DNA of 64,000 nt from the NCBI GenBank assembly GCA_964035545.1, contig OZ037767.1:24196628-24260627 (forward strand), in the 5' to 3' direction. Each line of letters opens with the position of its first letter. The stretch's first letter is position 1. Origin of the DNA: Bugula neritina (Eukaryota; Animalia; Bryozoa). Of the stretch, positions 3,001 to 41,415 are shown in pieces. Made by a program: the position numbers and the translations under genes. Under the pieces are notes generated by a model. It was not told where the DNA came from, did not search any database, and saw only the letters and a list, made by a program, of their open reading frames with translations.

Positions 3001-6000
3001 TACCTGTGAGAACTCCTGAAGGCTTGAAAACAGTCACCATCTTGTCGATAACTTCTTTCACAATCCAGGAAAATGGAAATTTGTTTGTGAAATTAGCATT
3101 TCCTTTACCAGCTGAGCGCAATAAAAATGATGTTGGAAGTCGCTGAAATTGAAAATATGACAACGCTGTGTAATAGCTGATTATAATCTAGCACTATTTG
3201 TTAGTTTAAGAAAGGCCTACTGCTTAACAAATTGTTTAACTTTGTAGTGATTTTGGGTCTACATTAATTTGGATTCTCTACGCTAAATATTGCGTTAGCT
3301 GTGCTAACTTAGGAAGTTATAGACGCATCTTGAAAATTAACTTTTTGAATGAAAATCATGATGCCATCAGCACATCTTTAGCTCAGTGGCTAGTCAATAA
3401 CAACACTCAATCATAATTAAAATATAAATATTTGGTGTTTTTATAACAAAACTCAAAGCATTCGTTTCTTATTCAGTTTATGGGAATGACCAAGTACTTC
3501 ATGACTGCCGGCTTTCTGAAAATTTCACATGACTAGCCATCTTGGTGAACTAAAGTTTCAGTTTCTTCAACATGTAAGGTTAATTCATTAAAATAAATTA
3601 GGTTGCACATATCAAAGGCAATATTGTGCACGCACACTGTTTATTAATTGTTATTAAATTATCTTTTAAAACCTGCATGATTTTTACACTATTCTTGGCT
3701 CACCAATCTTACTGATGAAATAAAACATACTTTTAAAAGCAGATAAAAATTGAGGTTAATAATAATGATAATTTAACTCACAGAGGATCCAGTTTTTCCT
3801 GAACTGGTCTGTGTTATTTGATCAAAATTCAAGCCAAATTCACCACAATGCGAAAATATCTGCAGCCACAAAGATTTAATTCCCTCATCATCTTGATTGA
3901 GAATTTTCAGATTTTTTTGTCTGTCGATGAACACAATAACAGCTGCTAATGCAGGTCTAAAAGACCTTTCCAAGGAGTCTTCTAAAGCATGCCTGTATAA
4001 TTATACAACACCATATTAATATTAAGCTAATAATAAGCAAATTTATATATACATTTAGCTTCTATATTTTGTTTACTTAAGGAGACAAAAAATACCTAAC
4101 AACAGTTTAAAGCAGCCAAACTTTTACAGAAAATAAATCAATTTACAAGTTTGTGCACACCTTGTATAATTCTGTCTTTGCTATTTGAAACTGTGTTACT
4201 AAAAATCTTTGGCAAATAATTTGGAAAGATGAAATCTTTTGTCAACCATTCATTACTATTTAAGATTTACTATCAGAATATTTTACTAGTTAATTGCTTG
4301 TTTTGAAGTACTTAGAACATGCTCAAAAGTATTTTTTAAGATATAAAAGTTTTCAGAGCACCAGCAACTAACCTTTACCAATTTTATAGAATTCTATTGT
4401 TATTAAAGATAGAATTGTCTCATGTGAGTATCATTATCGTAATAGGCATATCAATTGGCTATTGGAATATAAATCACCTGAGTGTCTCAGACTTCTTCAT
4501 GTTACTGGCATTTGCGGCATCTGTCTTCACCCAATCACATGTGGAGAACTCCTCTTGTCTACGCAGCAGCTCATAGACATGCTTCAAGAATACACCTCTA
4601 AACTCTGCAATAAATACCGTAATTGAAAATTAAATGCAGAAAATAAAAAATATGCAAGTGCAAAGAGACATATCTATAAATCAGCAGCTTATAAATTTCA
4701 ATAAGTATTTAATGTTAGTTAATAAGACAACATAAAATTGAAAGGCAGATTCAAATCAAAGTGCTGCCTACCTAATTTGCTGTAGATGTGTCTAATTTCT
4801 GATAGCCTGTCATAATGGTCAGCACACTCAATGAGAGACATAGCATACGGCAAACAGTCTCTTATAAACTGCATGATATCTTCTGCATCTTGCGTGGTTT
4901 CTAACTCTACAGCTGGCAAATCAATGGTGTAGGGTTTAGGCATCTCTGGATCCTGTAACTGTGAACTCTCAGTCTTTAGACCTGTTGGTACATCGAGCTC
5001 TTGATGTGTCTGACCTTCAGTGTCTAGATCCGCCTGGTGCTCAGTCTGTAGAACTGTAGTCTCCATAGCTGGCTGATGGCCAGCCTCCATATCTGTCCAA
5101 TCTCCAGCTACCAGATCTCTCTGTTGTTTAGTCTCTAGATCTGTTTCATCTTCAGTGTCCTCATCTGTTTCATCTTCCGTGTCCGCATCTGTTTCATCAT
5201 CAGTGTCCACAACTGTCTGATCTTCAGCCTCCAGTACTGTCTGATCTTCAGCCTCCAGTACTGTCTGATGTCTAGTCTCTAAATTTGTTTCATCTTCCGT
5301 GTCCACATCTGGCTGATCTTCAGTCTTCAGATCTGTTTCATCTTGAGTCTCCAGTACTGTCTGATTTTCAGGCTCCAGAGCTGGTGAATTCTTGATTTGT
5401 TGATCTACTGACTCATCTGATTCACTTTCTGCTACATCAGATGCGACAGACTCTCCATCAGAGTCTGTATCCTCATCCTATAATAACAAACACGCGAGTT
5501 CTATATAATATATTGACATTAGCTTAACAATTGTCAACGAATCTGTTGCAAGTTACAAGTTCGAGCTTTACAAATTTAAAAATAACTAAAACCTGAGCAA
5601 AGTAAATTACAGATGATGGATATTTTATGTCAAGATAGAGAAAGTAAAAACATTTGCTTCTTATTGGTTGACAATTATCTCCAGCATTGCTTCAATGCAA
5701 TAAAATAAAACAATTTGCTTTATTTCTTTCACTGAGGTTATTTAACGCTTAGTTACTTTCTAAACACACCTCGGACACATCTTCTAGGGGTGGCAAGTCA
5801 TCCAAGGAATCACAATTGTCTGCATTGTCTTGTTTATTAGCTTCGTGTTTAAAATTCAAAACACTTCTGATTAGTTGACTTGGCTTGATTTCCAGGCACT
5901 TCCGCAGAGAGGGTAGCCTAAACTGTGGAGGTCGAGGATCATCTATGTGGACACAAGTCCAATTTCCACCTGTGCACAGCATAGTAATAGTTTGCTTTAC

Positions 6001-9000
6001 ACCTCTATTGTTTTCTTATATTCCAGTTTGAGGCATAGGTTATATACTATTTCTTACTAATCTGACTTTGCTTCGTTAAACTTCTTTATGAATATGATTA
6101 AGAAGTTTTTATAAAAAAAATCAACAGTCTTATAGCTATAAATTTAATAAAACTACGTCTAGACTTCGTTAAGAAATGCAAGAAAGAATTTAAAACATTG
6201 TTTCAATTAAAAATTATATAACACAATACACATTTATACTTATCATCATAGATAAACAAACAAATACCAATACATGGGTGGCTAGTGCGGTGATATAATT
6301 AAAATAGAAGAAGAAATCAGTATAACCTTGATAGCCAGCATACTCTTGCCCTCTAGCCAGGCTAAGCAGAAGAATGGTGTGTGTGCAGTACTCTGCTGCT
6401 GTTGGAGACTCTCTCTGTATGATGTATCTTACTGAATCTAGCAGCTCTATGCTTTCATTGGCCGATTCACACTGTATCAGCAGTAACTTTGTGCTCTGCT
6501 CAGAAAACCTTCCATAGAAAGATCTAGAAATTGTATAGAATAATTGTGCTGATTCAGAGTTTGATATTAATATACTTTACTTTTTTCTTTTGGCTTTGAA
6601 GTCTAAAAATTTGATGAGAAGCTTTTAATATGAACATGAAGTACACTATAATATGACATATTAGCAGCTCAAAATCACAAACATGCGCATACATGTGATT
6701 TTTGACAAACAAAAACATACATGGAAACACTTAAAATATAAATATTGTATCTTCACAAGCATCAAAATGTTTTCTAAAATTTTATAAACGAATAGCTGGA
6801 GCATAACATTTGAAACACAGTATTTTTTTCATGTATTTAGTTTAGATTTTATGTCAATAAAAAAGTTGGGAATAAAAAGGGGTTACATTCTCACAGGAAA
6901 TCCTAGCTTAGAAAATTGCGACAAACCTGACAGCTTCGGTAAAAAGACTCTCTTTTGAAAAGTTTTTCAGGAAGATAGTTTTGATTTCAACAGGTGTATT
7001 CAGCTGGTGCTGCAGAGAGTCAATGTCTTCATAGCTCATCAGCTCAGCAAATGTCGTCACCTGCAGAATATTACCTCAAAAATATAAAAAGTTCTGTTGT
7101 TTACCAACACTTTTTATAAGCGTTTTTTAGCTTGCTGACCAACCTATGACATGGCTAATATAGTGTAAAACCACAGCATCACACTCAACAAGAAGGGCAC
7201 TCTTTGAAATTATACTAAAGCCAGATTTATATTTTCACAATTAGACAAAAAGATAATTTTATGAAGTTTTCTTGCAATACAAGAAAACTTATCAAACTCT
7301 TTGTCTTGAGACCCTTTTTTCAACCCATGTCCAGCATGAAATGTGATAGATACCTGAATTCGCAATGCCTGCTCACTGTCAGCATGCTGACTTAGTGCAT
7401 AGTTGAGAAACTGTAAGAGTGTCTCATGACAATGGCGCTCAAGGTACATGGCTTGAATTTCTGCAGCTTCCTCCTTCAACACAGTTCTATCCAGTCTAAG
7501 AATGCACTCGGCAGTGGCACATTGCAACATGTAGGACTTGGCTCTTTTCAATACCTAAAGTTAGAGTGAATGCTATATTCATTACATCACATATAAAATT
7601 TAACAAACTAAAAATTACAAGAATATACACAACGATACAGCTTACATCAACATAGCAAATAATTAATTATATAATAGAGATTCATTGAACAACAAAATAT
7701 AGTAAAGTTATTGTATGAACATAAGAATTTATGCGTGAAATTGGCTTTGATGTCTGAAGTGCTATAGTGAACTTTTTTATTTACTAGAAGCCACCTTCCA
7801 TTTGGGAATCACTGAAGCAATATCTCAACAGCACCACAACAGTCAATAAAACATAATTGAACATACAAAAAAGAGTAGTCATACATACTATTTTCCATAG
7901 CTGGTCAAAACTTGTTATTTCTGTTTTCTGATCAGAGGCTTTCCTCACTACCAAAGCTGTGCATTCCGAACTGTAGCCAATGAATGACGTGGCAACAGCA
8001 GAATTTTCAAAGTATTGCCTAAATCACACATTTTTAAAATTAAATAAATTAAATAACTTAACTCCTAATATTTATGCCATAGACTCTGCTATAATAACTC
8101 AATGAGATAACAGAGCAAAAGTGGTCGAATACCTGTAAGTTGGTTTGCTGTGTGTGAATTCACCAACAATGCCAATTTTATTAATAAAATTACCTCTTCT
8201 CAAGAGCTGCCTTGTCTATAGTCCACTCAAAGTCCACTATATGATGATCACAGTCTTTAACAGGACAAGTCTCTCTCATCACTTGACGGCAGCACTCACC
8301 AATATAGTGTTGTTCTGGGCAAGGCACTCGGTATGGCACGCTTAAATACTTCCCACAGCCATTGCAATTTTCTGGGCAGGACTTCCTATAATAAAAACAG
8401 TCGCTTTTGAGTTATTTAATGTTGTGTAAATTTGAATAACATAAGGCTTATCTAAAATCTGAAAATCAAAAATGTCAATATCTGAAAATCTGGTGTGGTG
8501 ACAATAATTGGTATTTAATAGTATTCACTAACTTATTATATTTTAATATAAAAACCTCTAAAACTGCTTTTTCAACTAAAAAAGCTACAAACTACAATTA
8601 TCAATCCCTGCTTAAATTTACAAACGGATATAACTTTTAAAACCTGCCTACATTTGCTAATATAAAAGTTAAAAAAAATATAATTAAAATTTACTCACGA
8701 AGTTAGATTGAACGGCTGAACAAACTTGGTCAGCCAATTTTCCAGCTGTTCTTTAACTGCCTTCTGGTCAGCGGTAAGGAGTGAAGTGGTAGAGACGTAG
8801 TGCTTCTCTAAGCGATTGATCAGAGGTATGGGAAACTGAGAATGTACTTTGTTTTTGTCAGCTATAAGCACTAGCCTAAACAGACAAATGACAGTTGAAA
8901 TTGTCAAAGATAACTTTGCAAAAATATTTGTAACACATGTTAACACTATACATGGGTGTATTGAGCCGAATGCTGTCCCATTATCCTTACAACTGACATT

Positions 9001-12000
9001 CTAATGCTGGTCACCTAACATTTACCATTACCTGAACGAGTCATGTACAAATGCCTTCACACGGTGAGTGCCAAGTCCGAGATCAACAAACTTCTTGTTC
9101 CCCCACTTAGAGAAATACTGATTCAAAGCATCGTATAGACTTTCATACAAGTCATCTAAGTTAAGCAGTATCACTGGTCTACCCATATCCATACACATCT
9201 TTATTCTGTACAGGTTATGGCAAACCTAAAGATTAAATCGTTCGACTATTTAGATATGCAAAGTTTGATTTCACAGTGTTGACCAAATTATTTATTTAAA
9301 TTCTCTTGCTTGTGATGAAAGATAGACAACGTTATTCCAGTATAAATTATCAACTAAAAAGCTTTGCCAGTGAGTATTATCATGGCCATGGAATGCCATC
9401 TATGTGTAGACAGAATTATGGAAGTTGTAGCACACAAAATATATGCAGTAAAAGCCTTTAGCACAGTTTTCTTCCACCAATACGATTGAAATAGAAGCTA
9501 TCAGAAACAATAACAAACAGACCTGTGTGTAGGACACATCATCACTGAATCTGCTGCCAAAAACCACTTCAGGGTGAAGGTCATTCTCAGCAAATTGATC
9601 AAGAATCACACTGAGAACACTGAGGTTTTCAGTGAGCACTAGCAAATAGCGGCTATCCATTCTGTTGAAAACAAATCATGATATAAACAAGACTATCAAG
9701 CGTTTATAGAGAAAGTTGATTACAACGTCTAAATGCCATAGGACCTAGCCAGTTCAGGACAATCAGACAACCAACAATACTGGCAAGGTATTTTCAACAA
9801 AGCAATATTATAGAGATTGACCACGTCACTGGCAATGCAATATATATACCCAGCATATAAAGAGTGTATATAATGTTAGTGTTGAGTGTATCTTTGTAAA
9901 GGAATTGGCCAGCCTAGACCTTGACCCTGAGAAAAGGGTGGGGTTAATAACATGTGTAAACAGATTTATAATTGCTGCGTAGATTTTATTCCTTTTCTGT
10001 ATTCTATGCTGAAATAATGTCCCTATACTTGAAGTACACCCGTGAACAATCACACTAAATTGCAGTTGTCTTCTCTTAGATAATTTAAAGTTATGATGCA
10101 CTCAGAAATCTAGCTTCTCAAAAACTGGAAGCAAACCTTAAGAACACCATATTGGTTTTCACACTAACCCAGTAGATGAACCAAAGAGACTTGATTTAAT
10201 TAGTCCAATAGAGTCAGTTGGGGGACCAGATTTAGGTTCTTTCTTCAAACTTTCTATAGCAGGGCAGTGTTTTCTGAATATGGTCATTGGATCAAAAATC
10301 TCCATATCAAAACCCCCAAAGTTTCGCTTGATGCTGTGCTCAACCTGCTCTACAGTCAAGTATCCAGTTCCTCGGGCAAAGTTCACGACCATTTTGATCA
10401 AACTGCAACATTAAAATATCTTTTTTCTCTAAAATTATTTAAATTTTATTTTGCAAAAAACATGTCATAAACTTTATAGTAAAACATATACCCATTTAGA
10501 CTGAAATGCTCTAATTTCGACATAGCACACTGTTACTTGGATATTTATTTATCCTTATTATGTGCATAGCATAGTATCAAAAACTTAGACGTACATAAAT
10601 ACATTGAGGTTGACTTAAATTTAGTGTATTATAAATATTGCTATATTACTATACTATGACTGATACTTTTTAGTTGATGTTTAACTGAAACCTAGTTAAA
10701 ATTAGTTTGTTTATAACCTAGTGTGCTGATTACTTCTGTTGTACAGCCACTGCAAGCAAAACGCCACTCTTAACAGAAACCTTTTGTTATGATATAATCA
10801 TGGTTGCGAAGTGGCTTTTACCAGTTAGGCAACTCTAAGCAGATTTCATTTAGTTGAACAATATTGAGGTAATCCATGTTTTGGGCTTTCTTAAGCATTC
10901 CTTAAACAAAGTAATATATAGAGGTGAGTTAATATTATGTAATCGTAATATAGGAAAAAGTTAGTATTATGTAACTATAATAGTATTTAATATACAGAGA
11001 CAAGCTTATTATCAATGTGACAACTCTAATTTCATTCCAGTTTAGTAAATTATAGCCTCGAAACTGACCTACATAAATAGAACATTCTGAAGGCGCTCTT
11101 AAATCCTAAGCATGTAACAATGAAACTAACCTGTAAAAATCTCTTAAGCCAAAAAACTCAGTTAAATCTCTCCGATCTGGTTTTTTAACTTCGCAAATCC
11201 TTCTATAAGCTGTGGAGAGTGGTGTGATAATGGATTCCACCTCATCACAACGCTGGTTTGATGAGCGACATATCTCTCTACAATGCGAGCATGTTCGAAT
11301 ATATTCGGATTGAGAATACGTTGATAAACTCAAGTCATGAAATAATATCCAGACTACAAACCTAGCAATGACCTCTAGCTCATTTGTGGCAGGGACACCA
11401 ATCTGTATGAAAATGCCTCGGTTCATTTTAGCAGGATCTAATGCCCAGTTGGAAATTCCAATAAAAGCACACTTTTTATGAGGCTCTGGTTCTTCATTTC
11501 CTAAACAGCCATCTTCCAGCAACGGGTGGAGAGTCTAGGGAAAATTTAAAACAAGTCATAACCATTGAGAACTCACAACCACCAAGGAACAAATTGCTAA
11601 CAAAAATTTGTATGACTCTAAAAATGCAACAGATGGCTTAGAATTTACTCATACATTTTTATTAGTTAAATTATTATTGGTTAAAATACATTTCGTTGAC
11701 ATTAGATAGTCTTTGCACATCAATTCTAAAAATATCAAAGGTTTTCTAAGACCCATGAAGTATTTAAGAAGAGGTGATAGCTTTCTTTTATTCACTGCGC
11801 ACCTTCAATGGCATGTTTTCAGAGTCCTCAGCCAGTCCGACTTCGTCCAACACCACGACAGACACAAACTCATCCAAATTCTTCTTCTCTTGAAAAGTGG
11901 CACAATGTTTGAAAACTCCAACAATTCCAGAAGGTGTAGCGTGCTTACTACATTGGAAGGACACCATGTAAGTCTAAAAATCACAATAAAATATAATCAT

Positions 12001-15000
12001 CCCACCAGAAACATAATTTAGCAATTGTTTAGAATTGATACGAGCAGTCAAACAGCATCCATACGTCTTTCATGGCTCTGAATAACTCTCTTTTGGACGT
12101 CCCTCCCTTCATAGCATCCAGCACCATAGCCTTGGAGAGGGACTTTGAACTGCCAGGTTTACCAATAACAAACAGTGGGATTCTGGTCTCAATGCACACT
12201 ATCATCATAAAGACATTCTCCTTGAGAGCTTTGTTCTTAGCAATATTCTTGTGCTGACTGGAGTCCACCACTTCGTTAATCAGCATGTCTTGACATCTAA
12301 AGCATGGAAGTCAGGCTGGTGATGTAGTAGTTTGTGATCATATGTAAAAAGATAAATATGCCTTTTGCCAACCTTTATAATTTAAAACCTTGTAGATTAG
12401 TATAACTGAAATATACTAACAAGCAGTAACATGCCTCGTGATACACTGAAATTCAGTGTTAGACGTTGCAAGCAATTAACGAATTTTATGCTGTGATACA
12501 CTGGCATACATCAAAAGATATTCACGAGGAACAACATGTGCTGGCATACACCAACAGACACTGGTTATACACTAAACTCTAGCAAATAATTTGTAAAACA
12601 ATTCTAAAATCAAATATGAAGTGAAACCGGGAAACTAAAAGGGGACTAGATTTTTACAGATATTGATAGTCTATTGCCCAAAAGGCATTACAGTGAATAA
12701 ATAATAAGTAGTTTAATCTAATGAAGTGTTTGTACACACAATTTAGTGAAATTGCAAAGAAGGGGTGGGGCTTGAAATACTTAATACTTATACATACTCA
12801 CATTATCAGCAGTTTTTACATAAAAGATGCTAAATGCAACCAATTAAATCTTCTGAGTAAGCATTGCATAAGTTGTAAATGCTTGGAACATTTCAGTAGT
12901 AGTTATCTAACCCTGATCACTAACAACAATGTTTTTGAAAAATAATTTTTTTTAGATATATTTTTAAAAGCCAGTGATAGAAACATATGCTATTGTGCTA
13001 TAAGAAACTAGTCTGAAAGCACAGCCATAATACTTACAGTGTGAGTTGCTGAGATAGGATATTTGACCCATTAACCAGCCGGTTACCGAGGAGAGATGAA
13101 ATATCACTGCTAATGGCCTGGACATACTCCTGTCTAGTCTTCTCTTCTAATCTAGCCAGATAGCACACGCCAATAGACAACAGCAGGCTTCGAATCTCAT
13201 CTGTAGGCTAAAGTATATATTTATATAGTATTTAAAAACTGTATTTATATTTGCAAGTGAAACTGTTCTAAAACCCTGATTCGTTTTGAAAACTTGAGTT
13301 GCTGCGAACAGTCAGCTTACTCTAGTTTCTAAACTATGACTGTGTTTACTATAAATTGTTTCTTTGCTTCTAGAACCTGTTACAGAACAACAATAATACA
13401 AAATTACTTCTTTACTAATTTATACCAAATGTTAATGTAACATGGCACAACCACACAGGCAATATGTAAAATCTCTCTCAAAGCAAATAATTCTTTATAG
13501 CTGCTAAAATGATGATACCAACAACTTCCGAGTTACTCATGAAGCTACAGCTTTATTACATTGATCAATATTTAAAGAGACTCCTTGGATAAGCTTCTAG
13601 TTTGAAGAGTTCTCAGATGCACACTACACTTTGGGTTCAGTCATAACACAGACTAATTGACTGTATGTCAACACAACCTAACAGCACAAACTTACTGTTT
13701 AAGATATTTTCATCTTTAACGGTGATATTCTGCAAATGCCGAAAATAATTTCTGACCGAATCAACTAATTTGCAATTATTTTAAATTGCTGATAAAACAT
13801 TATTGCGAGTTACCTGAAAATATTCATTAGCCCTGTTTGCTGTATTGAAAGGGGTGTCAAGTCTTTCTGAACGCAAGCTTTCCATGGCTAAATAGAGAGT
13901 AGTTCGCTGAGAGTAAAACCATTTAGCTACGTCTAGGAATCGCTGAATGTCCCGTAAGCTCACAAAACTGCATTCATCCTGTGAAAAGATGCAGACAATT
14001 GTTAGCAAAAGTTAGGAAAAAAAATTGCCCCATATTATTATTATTATAATATAATTATTACTACATTACCCTGATTTTTCTGATCGAGAGGTTGGAATAT
14101 TAGCCCTATATAAGTATATCAATTGAAAGAAAAATTATGATAGAGTAAAAATCTTCAGAAATTCCAACTTTAAAGCTATAAATCTTGGCAAGCATACGTA
14201 ATGTATCACAGTATATTGAGAATGCTCTCCAATAAAATGCAACTATTTTGAATAAATGACAAATGAATGATATGCATTCTTATAAATTGCATCATTACCA
14301 AGTAAACAATAATTACTAACTAATCATTAAACAAAAATTACCATATAAACAAAAATTACTATTTAAACAACTGTTGCAAATTGAACAATTGAACAATTAA
14401 AAGTAGGATGCTAGCCGTGGCTCTTCTATTCGCCAAGGGCAATTAGAAAAACCCCTAATCTTTTAACAAATCAGGGCTACTAGCTAATACAATAACATTT
14501 AATGATAATAGGTAATGCTTTTATAAACTCTTTTTAAATTATTTCTTAAATGTTTCTACCTGTTGTCTTCTCATGAATGTCTGTGATTTTGCTAGAAGCC
14601 GAGATAAGCAGTCAGCAAGAGATGAACTGAAGTGTATATCAGTGTGGCTGTTGCCATCATCCTGTTGCAATATACACATTCACTTTATTACAATGCTTAC
14701 ATATAAATGCAATATTTCAGTGCTTTGAGAAATAAAAAAAGTATCTACGGTAACTGCAAGCTTATCTGCAAAGGCAAAATATTGAAAAAAACATCAAAAT
14801 TATATCAAATCCCTCTGTTTGAAAAATATATGTAGGACATTTTTGTATTCTAAATCACAACCCAAACAATGAATACTTTTTCTCATAATACACTTTGTAT
14901 GTATTACTTTATCTTGCTATTTTCAACTTTACAATGGGAACTTTAAAACTTAATCTCATCCTTAAGAAACACTAGAACTTATGAATATTTTTTCATTTAA

Positions 15001-39000: not shown

Positions 39001-41415
39001 CTGGACCTGGCTGTCGAAAGACAGTCCCTATAAATAGAAAAACACAAAATGGATCAGCACAACAAAGTTACGTTATTCAAAATTGGATAACTTGCATAAT
39101 TTATAAAGACATTTTAAAATACAATGATAGCTACATCTACATAAGATATAGTGTACAATAATATCAAACTGATAGTTGTATATTGCATATAACATATGAC
39201 ACGCAGTGTATAGCACATGTATAATATATAATATTTGGTGTATTACATAATATATGTAGAATAATTATATAACATATAATATTCAAAGTATACATTGATT
39301 ATATACCATCACACACAAGCGACACGCACCTTCTGAAGTTGCTTGAGAACCAAACTGTGGTTGGGTCCCATCGATAGTCTTACCACCTGCAAAATAGAGA
39401 AATCAACTATATTTACTACAAACTACTGTTAATATGCAAATTCCAGGAAATAAAGCAAGATGGAGCTGCCATAAATTGCAGTCGTACTCTGGATATTTGT
39501 CAAAGCGCAATCATGGATGAAATATATAAGCCTTTATCATGGCTGAAAAGAAGGGAAAACATAAACAGTTGTGTTGAGCACACCTGGTTAGCACATTGTT
39601 TTAAAAGTTACAACACCTTATAGTAACAACATGCACAGCCATAACTGTAAACCACAAGGATAGGATAATATTCTGTACTTAATAGCATATAATCAGTTAA
39701 ATTTTTCCTAATGTAATAAATAATATTATATCATCACTGCATTGGGTGATAAGGCATTAGAAAAACTGATATGGGCAATATTTTAGCCCACTCTTATATT
39801 TTATTAGCCCATTGAACAACAGACTAATCAGCAGATCAGCAAAATAAAAGTAACCAGCAAGCATCAATGCTTCTGCAGAACAAAACACTCTTTGAGTTTG
39901 ATGAAAAACCTAACCATTACTTATGGGTACAATATAGAAGAACAGTTTTACAAAAGTAATACTTTAGCTCATTAGATAATAATTAGTGGCAAAATTTATA
40001 CATAAAGAATCTAAACAATGGAAACCAAACTCTAGTAATAGCCTATACCAACCCTTGTCACCCATTTCATTAACATGATGAACTGTTGAGTGTTGCCTTT
40101 CTTTACTTTCTGCAGCTGGAGCTTGCTTACTAGCTGGAAGACTGAAAATACAGGAACACAGTGCATCATAGTGCACTAGCTGGTATACATACGAGTATTA
40201 CCTACACTACAACTTTCACACAGCTGGAATTTATATCTATATAAACACAAACACAACATACAAGTATACACAATTTATATGTGTGGTAAATATCAAATGC
40301 ACAGACAATAATATATACATGTTTTAATATTTATATTATAATGCTGTTACCATTTTTAAAATACATAAATTTATCTCATTACCAAAATAAGTTGCCAAAA
40401 GGTTAAACTAGACCATTTCATATTCTTAAACAAATTTTTATGTTAGAATTAGTTAAACAGTATGTGTCAGATACTACGTAAGTTCGACATTGCAGTGTTT
40501 TCAAATAACCATATTTCTGGCAAAACTTTAAGGCACGAGAAGCCACCCAACTATGAAATAAGACAAACACACTTCAAACTCAAAGGCTAAACAAAAAATT
40601 ATAGCAATAATCTACATATCACTTTCTAACAGGATATTAAGGAGTTCCACCTGGTAGAATGAAAATACCTGGTTGAGCCATCTGGAGAGTTGCTTGTAGA
40701 GTCTACGCTTCTATCAGCTGATGAAGCTGAAGAGCCTGCAACAGGGGGTTTGTCAGTTGGGGGGTGTTCAGAGACTCCCGACACTGGCTTGTTGATAGCT
40801 AGAAATTGCCAGTAAACATAACATGTAGATCTATAGTTACTAATAACTAGAAATCCACAGTAAATATACTATATCTATAATTACTAATAACTAGAAATCC
40901 ACAGTAAATATACTATATCTGTAGTTGCTAACATGAGAATTCTCGCACTGCAACTAGTAGTTGTGTAGAGTACACTCAACATCTGAATATTAAATGATTT
41001 GTCATAATAAATATGATTATACAAATAGTTATAAAACAGCATGTTACTTATGTACAATTAAATTAAATGTTTTATTGCTCTTACTTTTATCTCGATTATT
41101 TTACTATAAAAGATCTGTAACTACTATTACTTTTTAAGATAGCAAGTTTATAGTTGCAAAAGAATTAATATTGTTTCATTAAATAATCTTGCCTCCTTGA
41201 GCTTTTGTAGTGTAGTTATGTTTGCATCCTCCACAGAACTTGGCAAAACCTTTTTTGGTTACTTTGCGAGGTTTCTGGCAGGAAGGACATTGTAAGTCCT
41301 CACCACACTCTTCACAGCACGCTGGGTACGTCCCGTCACTCTCCTGCTCTATCTCATTCTGACACTCTGTGGCTGGGCATATCAGGGCTGCCGACTTATC
41401 ATTAGCACCGGCCAT
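33..41415 (-). CDS. RNF213: RNF213/mysterin-like giant AAA+ ATPase / E3 ubiquitin ligase; about 70 coding exons; 3'-partial (canonical RING and E3 core expected beyond the left edge)
   Basis: A chain of spliced exons (phase checked by hand for most junctions) carries RNF213-diagnostic motifs in the expected order: N-terminal Zn ribbon, EYKY..NRYL (CBM20-like), LNYFTTAQLVILRKEL, RAGVGKS, IHLDIAHEV, DPTWSELRHYVHFL, DPDPNYVLTMDNAKKIIAIHQR, GETGCGKT, VHGGTT, FLDEVNTTEA, IAACNPYR, RHLVYRVQPLPQSLLPLVWDFG, DECSFVSLRDI, IAKNKALKENVFMM, GKPGSSKS, VVLDEVGLAEDS, ISNWALDPAKMNRG, FFGLRDFY, SRYLLVLTEN, LYESLYDALNQY, FPIPLINRLEKHY. Confidence 0.95.
4772..5477 (-). repeat. Coding 24-nt (8-aa) acidic tandem repeats inside a large RNF213 exon
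   Basis: Units such as DQTVLEAE, DETDADTE and DETDEDTE; nucleotide unit e.g. tcttcagcctccagtactgtctga is repeated around 5200-5270. The exon is GT-AG bounded and in phase with exon 5770-5969. Confidence 0.85.
8194..8385 (-). CDS. Extra RING-like zinc-finger exon inserted in RNF213 directly after the AAA module (192 nt, phase 2-2)
   Basis: Boundaries tatag|GAAG...GAGAAGAG|gtaatt; open and in frame with both flanking exons. It reads KSCPENCNGCGKYLSVPYRVPCPEQHYIGECCRQVMRETCPVKDCDHHIVDFEWTIDKAALEKR. Confidence 0.75.
8699..9661 (-). CDS. RNF213: RNF213 final AAA domain exons (9522-9661, 9031-9225, 8699-8875)
   Basis: SRYLLVLTEN...VVFGSRF; IKMCMDMGRPVILLNLDDLYESLYDALNQYF...FVDLGLGTHRVKAFVHDSFR; FPIPLINRLEKHY. 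Confidence 0.88.
11803..12296 (-). CDS. RNF213: RNF213 catalytic AAA4 (exons 12065-12296 and 11803-11973)
   Basis: Walker A FVIGKPGSSKS and Walker B VVLDEVGLAEDS are intact. Confidence 0.9.
16169..17953 (-). CDS. RNF213: RNF213 catalytic AAA3 (exons 17827-17953, 17091-17207, 16169-16326)
   Basis: Walker A GIPVIVMGETGCGKT, VHGGTTEADI, Walker B ILFLDEVNTTEA and IIAACNPYR are all intact. Confidence 0.9.
16527..16746. mobile_element. Non-autonomous TIR element (MITE), 220 bp, TGT...ACA ends, 5-bp TSD
   Basis: TIR tgtagtgaaattagtgtgagtttgcttaactatc (16527-16560) matches gatagctaagcaaactcacactaatttcactaca (16713-16746) with 1 mismatch. It is flanked by gcaag on both sides and lies in an RNF213 intron. 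Confidence 0.85.
21877..22108 (-). CDS. RNF213: RNF213 AAA2 exon (Walker A RAGVGKS; IHLDI)
   Basis: Translates as ...VLRSTRAGVGKSLQRGNL...TIHLDIAHE; GT-AG bounded. Confidence 0.85.
26268..26333 (-). mobile_element. tRNA-derived SINE head / tRNA pseudogene remnant
   Basis: The minus strand has Pol III A box TGGTGTAATGG and B box GGTTCGAATTCC at tRNA spacing, but no proper anticodon or acceptor stems. Weaker relatives occur near 33205-33280 and 48575-48640. Confidence 0.6.
36049..36776 (-). CDS. RNF213: RNF213 CBM20-like domain (exons 36624-36776 and 36049-36200)
   Basis: DIEFWAVLINAP...DGVWKGNCSVPK..LIEYKYFVK...EFEDLVGEGNRYL; the position and the YKY/E/NR pattern fit the N-arm CBM20-like fold of RNF213. 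Confidence 0.65.
40829..40931. repeat. 44-bp tandem duplication (about 2.3 copies), intronic
   Basis: atctatagttactaataactagaaatccacagtaaatatactat starts at 40829 and again at 40873. Confidence 0.85.
41193..41415 (-). CDS. RNF213: RNF213 first coding exon: double zinc-ribbon-like N-terminus
   Basis: MAGANDKSAALICPATEC...CCEECGEDLQCPSCQKPRK...FAKFCGGCKH, resembling the human RNF213 start (CPSCQ...KFCSQCG). Acceptor ttgtag precedes 41422. The exon ends at a GC donor (GGA G|gcaaga) that is in phase with exon 40669-40798. Confidence 0.85.

Follow-up and report, generated by a model that had tools for sequence, protein, structure and literature searches.

The question raised by this locus is why a gene for RNF213 (mysterin), a giant immune ubiquitin ligase with a RING domain in its E3 (ubiquitin ligase) module, should carry a further RING-like finger inside its ATPase core. 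The stretch concerned is 64,000 nt of the Bugula neritina genome (contig OZ037767.1, positions 24,196,628 to 24,260,627), which we call the window, and the RNF213 gene is read on its minus strand. The finger is encoded by a single small exon, the finger exon, to which an earlier note on this DNA had drawn attention. We conclude that this exon is probably an intragenic duplicate of the canonical RING exon of the same gene, with a RING-folded product that most likely acts as a non-catalytic docking or regulatory module. Coordinates of the exons and introns discussed are given in Table 1.

The finger exon and its RING character

Both junctions of the finger exon are of phase 2 and the exon is thus symmetric, as the earlier note had said. 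On the minus strand it is flanked by AG (acceptor, 8387-8386) and GT (donor, 8193-8192). The exon upstream of it ends at 8699 with FVQPFNLT and two further bases, TC, and the exon downstream begins at 8018 with G followed by QYFENS...FIGYSSE. The codon-aligned translation of the finger (frame 8196-8384, minus strand) is KSCPENCNGCGK...PCPEQHYIGECC...CPVKDCDHH, and it reproduces exactly the Cys and His spacing given in the earlier note, namely C7-x2-C10-x11-C22-x3-H26-x2-G29-E-C31-C32-x7-C40-x4-C45, with an additional Cys at position 3.

The ligands can be assigned from the sequence as C7, C10, C22, H26, C31, C32, C40 and C45, giving eight predicted Cys or His ligands in C3HC4 order. An alignment of 20 finger exons from homologues (A1), with a mean identity of 46%, has no variation at C7, C10, C22, H26, G29, C31, C32 and C40, and at least 90% of the sequences have C45. 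The spacing is not that of a canonical RING (H-x2-3-C-x2-C and a final C-x2-C), and where the canonical copies have H-x-I-C-D-x-C the finger has H-Y-I-G-x-C-C, with Gly invariant at the position of ligand 5. The remodelling would be one in which the fifth ligand became this Gly and its role passed to a putative ligand two residues on, presumably the Cys that is paired with ligand 6 as Cys-Cys. The last ligand pair is C-x4-C in most finger copies, and some canonical copies of the lineage are alike in this.

With regard to fold, the earlier suggestion that the 64-residue peptide is RING-like is well supported by the AlphaFold2 model built from A1, which has a predicted local distance difference test score (pLDDT) of 80. 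In a Foldseek comparison with the PDB the top matches were almost all RING, U-box or SP-RING domains, with TMq of about 0.6, and included Rad18, TRAF6, SIAH1, RING1B and RNF125. VIA-align gave Z scores of 5-6.4 and a root-mean-square deviation of about 2 Å, with 55-58 of the 63 residues aligned, all of these matches being to RING or U-box domains. The model is thus predicted to have the cross-brace RING/U-box fold.

Two results of the profile and sequence searches were set aside. A weak Pfam match to zf-RAG1 covers 10 residues of the finger exon and is taken as noise from the CPxxxC-x-H stretch, and two bacterial CARDB proteins (P0005 and P0017) among the phmmer matches are spurious.

Comparison of the finger exon with its counterpart in an orthologous contig (L035, about 80% identical overall) gave a non-synonymous divergence (dN) of 0.083, a synonymous divergence (dS) of 0.90 and a dN/dS of 0.09, and the sole indel is of 12 nt and in frame, showing the predicted module to be under strong purifying selection.

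Origin from the canonical RING exon

The earlier note had placed the canonical RING of the gene just past the left edge of the window, and an exon for it was indeed found there. It scores 28 bits on Pfam zf-C3HC4_3, against a cut-off of 27, and the exon that follows it aligns to human RNF213 immediately past the RING of that protein. The same gene thus carries both a canonical RING and an extra RING-type finger, as had been proposed, and the presence of both copies rules out the other proposal, that the RING had been relocated.

The two exons have in common phase 2-2, a CPxxC-x2-C start, a P-x-(R/K)-L-P-C-x-H core and an aromatic tail. The canonical exon starts x-N-C-P-x-x-C-P-x-C and those of the finger family x-N-V-C-P-x-x-C-x-G-C. 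The canonical RING differs in having H-x2-C-x2-C and a passing Pfam score, and the residue between its ligands 1 and 2 is hydrophobic, whereas the finger has H-x2-G-x-C-C, usually Gly between ligands 1 and 2, and fails on Pfam.

The evidence for homology comes from profiles. When A1 was compared by hhalign with an alignment of 8 canonical RING exons (A2) the probability was 97.7% and the E-value 1.4e-12, over 52 columns that make up essentially the entire exon, and this answers the suggestion that the finger be aligned with the gene's own RING. A search of the whole 216-Mb genome with the A1 profile gave 15 matches, 8 being finger exons and 7 RNF213 canonical RINGs, with no other RING among them. 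As controls we took the RINGs of the genome that are most similar to the RNF213 RING. In this set the canonical RINGs of eight paralogues received 19.5-38.7 bits from A1. RINGs from outside RNF213 received no more than 15.1 bits, and the finger-bearing paralogue that is most divergent had only 12.9 bits for its canonical RING. These three lines of comparison indicate homology of the finger to a bona fide RING, and taken with the model they point to a RING-derived, degenerate RING of about 64 residues.

A tree of all rows of the two alignments separated the finger and canonical exon types with support of 100/100, with a Watersipora member on each side and matching groupings of paralogues. The profile comparison and genome search give backing to the idea of the earlier note that a symmetric exon had been inserted, in this case by exon duplication. 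In a bryozoan ancestor a 171-nt RING exon of phase 2-2 would have been copied into a phase-2 intron of AAA5, about 800 residues upstream, with the reading frame kept because the RING exon is phase symmetric. Timing apart, the data establish the origin by duplication of the canonical RING exon. A single intragenic duplication is the simplest reading, and we infer that it predates the spread of most paralogues and also the split from Watersipora.

Host gene and site of insertion

Searches were run exon by exon or with database proteins. The exon upstream of the finger exon aligned to residues 3102-3158 of mouse RNF213 and to 3185-3240 of the human chain (E 2.6e-11), and the Walker A motif GKPGSSKS was found in the exon at 12029-12286. 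The nearest annotated relatives are two proteins of the bryozoan Watersipora subatra that are named RNF213-like, P0030 and P0016. Both carry the finger. P0030 is a single model that spans the GKPGSSKS Walker A, PLINRLEKH, the finger and FIGYSSE, and P0016 aligned with mouse RNF213 over 530 residues. The gene can on these grounds be assigned to RNF213/mysterin, with a dynein-like AAA core and RNF213-specific motifs.

Vertebrate RNF213 (mouse 6TAX and 7OIK, human 8S24) likewise has an AAA core with the GKPGSSKS Walker A and a PLINRLEKHY motif, and a canonical C3HC4 RING in the E3 module, and the exon-level alignments agree. The difference is that about 47 Cys-poor residues lie between NRLEKH and FIGYHSD in vertebrates, whereas the Bugula gene has the 64-residue RING-type module inserted there. 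The mouse counterpart of the insertion site is ...QQWAHEFA-DVKAD-QFIARHKYSPADVFIGYHSD, a short linker without Cys, and the finger fills exactly that gap. The earlier description of a short vertebrate linker lacking a zinc finger at this spot is thus correct.

In mouse RNF213 the AAA core comprises residues 1775-3405, with IR5 in AAA5 at 3063-3103 and the RING at 3940-3999 (PMC7311170). As the flanking exon aligns to about 3102-3158, within the core, the insert lies inside the ATPase ring, in AAA5 just past IR5, about 240 residues before the end of the ring and about 800 residues N-terminal of the canonical RING. The earlier note had put it right after the AAA+ motor, and this has to be revised since the flanking exons map inside the core. 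The mouse chain numbering possibly carries a small tag offset. The 44-residue downstream exon gave no phmmer match against the PDB, and the mapping on that side was made with the longer Watersipora protein instead. No RZ finger was found in a quick Pfam scan of a few downstream open reading frames, the 3' end of the gene not being mapped.

Likely function

In classical RING E3s, such as those in the complexes of c-Cbl, RNF4 and BIRC7, the ubiquitin-conjugating enzyme (E2) is contacted by two hydrophobic residues, one between ligands 1 and 2 and the other in the central helix, and by a Pro-containing loop at ligand 7. E2~ubiquitin is activated by a basic linchpin that follows the last ligand. 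In the finger, 15 of the 20 copies have Gly between ligands 1 and 2, where most canonical copies have Val, Ile or Met, and the position after ligand 8 is Asp or Gly and not Arg or Lys. The earlier note had suggested that the finger could give a new interface for an E2 or a substrate, or a decoy; its sequence argues against a classical E2-activating surface. The canonical RING is itself dispensable for ubiquitin transfer in mouse RNF213 (PMC7311170). Because of the Gly at the E2-contact position, the missing basic linchpin and the mouse result, we think it most likely that the finger acts as a zinc-stabilised docking or regulatory module at the surface of AAA5, and not as a second RING that activates E2~ubiquitin.

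The finger would stand out from AAA5 in the ATPase ring, a long way from the canonical RING, and would serve there as a predicted zinc-stabilised docking or regulatory module in the manner of the non-catalytic partner RINGs. BARD1, BMI1/PCGF and MDMX have the RING fold and intact zinc sites with a degenerate E2-activating surface, and act in docking and dimerisation. BMI1/RING1B structures are among the fold matches of the finger. Each partner RING is however a protein of its own, paired with an active RING by way of flanking helices, whereas the finger is embedded in the ATPase ring.

Several observations count against this interpretation. Two adjacent Cys on one zinc would be unusual, and none of the 20 finger members reaches a Pfam RING gathering score (best E 0.001-0.07). 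Every Foldseek match has an E-value above 0.03, Z scores of 5-6 are no more than middling for a small domain of any kind and the AlphaFold2 model is without metal; modest fold scores are to be expected for a domain of 63 residues, and the predicted matches are consistent with each other. The tree is unrooted, and the order of events is thus deduced. The RNA discussed below consists of contigs from a relative about 93% identical, and not of raw reads from the animal itself. Assignment to the large or the small subdomain of AAA5 is based on sequence alignment with numbering subject to the tag offset. Finally, two features of E2 contact are retained in the finger, the hydrophobic residue of the central helix, which comes four positions after ligand 6, and the Pro that follows ligand 7.

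The last of these observations, together with the RING fold, the eight conserved ligands and the strong purifying selection, would fit a fully working second E3 RING that activates E2~ubiquitin at the ATPase ring and provides a second site of ubiquitin transfer. We think that this has only a modest chance of being right, given the Gly at the E2-contact position, the Asp or Gly after the last ligand, and the ability of the mouse protein to transfer ubiquitin without even its canonical RING.

Paralogues, other bryozoans and other phyla

The PLINRLEKH exon has nine copies in the genome and in eight of the nine the finger exon is next to it, so the finger exon of the window recurs at 7 further loci. 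This recurrence and the invariance of the ligands in the 20 homologues make the finger more than a chance pattern. The canonical RING is 8-12 kb downstream in seven of the finger-bearing paralogues and about 35 kb downstream in the divergent eighth. Metagenome and Logan contigs have the same three-exon arrangement.

In the case of the ninth paralogue, which is also divergent (C2:26.10 Mb, G000:C2:26098000-26117999), there is a PLINRLEKH exon, a FIGY exon and a canonical RING, and the finger exon is absent from the 0.9 kb between the PLINRLEKH and FIGY exons. This may be either the ancestral state or a loss.

For the survey of other phyla we searched with the P0030 region and took the best 120 of 173 RNF213 fragments, of which 112 span both motifs. 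The gap from NRLEKH to FIGY is 30-59 residues with 0-3 Cys in 109 of these 112, including amphioxus, the bivalves Ruditapes and Dreissena, the gastropod Gigantopelta, the coral Orbicella and several fishes. A fragment from the hemichordate Saccoglossus has FIDY at the usual spacing, as judged by eye, and two outliers with long gaps are misreads of the motifs. Among these best 120 fragments only P0030 of Watersipora has a long Cys-rich gap, with 115 residues and 8 Cys. On present sampling the insert is thus a bryozoan innovation; the earlier note had allowed that it might be a general feature of invertebrate RNF213, and the short, Cys-poor gap in nearly all fragments shows that it is not.

Some variants of the exon deserve mention. 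The paralogue at G000:C4:18802898-18803059 (L008:1495-1665, plus strand) has a shorter finger exon that keeps all of the ligands and is without the conserved F-x-W-x-V-D-x-x-A-L tail before the final N-R. In Watersipora subatra (OY755163.1) the finger exon, at L010:9989-10192 on the plus strand, has an apparent GC donor (CACAG|GCAAGA), and NCBI models split the gene at this exon, one ending upstream of it and P0016 beginning at a Met within it.

A further finger-type exon was found in the RNF213 of a relative, on ENA contig ERZ4903308 NODE_4479 (L037:2851-3027, plus strand). It has H-Y-V-G-P-C-C, ends in ENR and is of phase 2-2, and lies between homologues of the window exons 10169-10402 and 9521-9661; the usual finger exon is also present, at 4839-5060. 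In this animal, therefore, the cassette would have been copied again into another phase-2 intron. One could go further and see the RING exon as a mobile symmetric cassette that was copied repeatedly in bryozoan RNF213, into AAA5 in the ancestor and again in the L037 animal, with the ring-borne RINGs pairing with neighbouring canonical RINGs or with E2. This is speculative and we consider it unlikely, but if true it would couple the ATP-driven movements of the ring to oligomerisation or to a second route of ubiquitin transfer on pathogen surfaces.

Transcription and the remaining alternatives

The RNA evidence consists of assembled contigs of two runs, X1 and X2, from an RNA-Seq library labelled as symbiont metagenome. 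The contigs are about 93% identical to the window and so represent either a close relative or a divergent allele. They are restricted to exons, and the joints have GT..AG ends on the minus strand. The finger exon is joined on both sides, by contig joints 8017>8193 and 8384>8698, and one contig (X2 record 8) unites the exons 7352-7550, 7885-8017 and 8193-8385, with 29 loose letters that, as judged by eye, are similar to the last part of the 8699 exon and differ from it at several points, as a relative would. The finger exon is thus genuine and is spliced into mRNA as an ordinary exon, through the two junctions (8699>8385 and 8194>8018) that the earlier note had predicted.

The same note had warned that a strong cryptic donor inside the exon would shift the frame if used. 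The site in question is a GGTGAGT at 8300-8294; no joint at this position is among the contig joints, and X1 record 3 and X2 record 8 run uninterrupted through 8193-8385.

It had also raised the possibility of switching by splicing, that is of a regulated cassette exon by which the second finger would be toggled. The symmetry of the exon means that a skip would keep the frame, and the otherwise intact paralogue without the exon indicates that the protein tolerates its absence. However both RNA runs assembled the included form only, with a contig depth for the finger exon comparable to that of its neighbours, and the skip joint 8699>8018 is not among the contig joints, which is a weak negative as contigs can miss rare isoforms. 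Switching thus finds no support here, and we regard it as quite unlikely.

Capture of the finger from an unrelated RING gene by exon shuffling, its likeness being then only that of RINGs in general, is very improbable: a single-sequence search with the canonical RING does place a number of other genomic RINGs ahead of the finger exons, but the finger-family profile finds RNF213 RINGs alone genome-wide and leaves the control RINGs at 15 bits or less against 19.5-38.7, and finger and canonical exons share the lineage-specific CPxxC prefix, an aromatic-x-aromatic tail, exon limits and phase 2-2.

Two other joints in the contigs are irregular. One, 10296>11131, is an alternative joint with AA..AC ends seen in X2 only, and the other, 11973>12066, has non-canonical CT..CG ends and one extra letter. 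Offsets in the alignment, reads from paralogues or minor isoforms could account for them.

Features of the locus

Table 1. Exons, introns and splice-site look-alike discussed in the text (window positions unless a contig is named)
Feature	Position	Strand	Length and phase	Evidence or remarks
Upstream AAA5 exon, LVLIADKNKVHSQFPIPLINRLEKHY...FVQPFNLT	8699..8875	-		donor to 8385; contig joints 8384>8698, 8874>9031
Intron, AAA5 exon / finger exon	8386..8698	-	313 nt, phase 2	sequence and RNA joints
Finger exon	8194..8385	-	192 nt, 64 codons, phase 2-2	sequence, spliced RNA, conservation, RING homology, predicted fold
Cryptic donor look-alike GGTGAGT	8294..8300	-		made by codons Gly29-Glu30-Cys31; unused in assembled transcripts
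Intron, finger exon / FIGYS exon	8019..8193	-	175 nt, phase 2	sequence and RNA joints
Downstream exon, QYFENSAVATSFIGYSSE...	7889..8018	-		matches mouse QFIARHKYSPADVFIGYHSD; joints 8017>8193, 7550>7885 (cut +4)
Canonical RING exon	L013:9100-9270	-	171 nt, phase 2-2	731 bp beyond left edge of window
Ninth paralogue, PLINRLEKH exon	L043:3160-3327			
Ninth paralogue, FIGY exon	~L043:4240-4340			
Ninth paralogue, canonical RING exon	L044:2662-2940			

The divergence of the gene from contig L035 is uneven. For window 8194-8385 against L035:10034-10234 the finger exon has the dS of 0.90 given above and the neighbouring exons have 0.11-0.31, whereas in the X1 and X2 contigs, at about 93-94% identity, the divergence of the finger exon does not exceed that of the exons around it. 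A mosaic of this kind is a hint of gene conversion or of recombination between alleles or paralogues.

Two other parts of the gene also drew attention. A long exon at 4719-5306 (minus strand), between the AAA core and the E3 module, has an acidic repetitive stretch (DTEDETD..., with TVLEAEDQ repeated), and its Watersipora counterpart is acidic and not repetitive. The probable first coding exon, at 41179-41415 (minus strand), has a Cys-rich start resembling a zinc ribbon (CPATEC...CCEEC...CPSC...CGGC), and gave only a weak DZR match in Pfam.

Significance for RNF213

Full-text literature searches gave no account of an RNF213 with a second RING, and one bryozoan paper lists RNF213 merely as differentially expressed. 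The finger exon offers a clean and datable case in which a symmetric exon was duplicated within its gene and so added a domain.

What the RING does in RNF213 is not settled, since the mouse protein can transfer ubiquitin when its RING is lacking (PMC7311170). In the Bugula lineage a copy of this RING was placed in the ATPase ring and retained under strong purifying selection as the paralogues rose to eight or more, with one of its zinc sites and its E2-contact surface altered. Such retention speaks for a valuable non-catalytic role of the RING fold in RNF213. The paralogue at C2:26.10 Mb, being without the finger, is a natural comparator for what that role may be.

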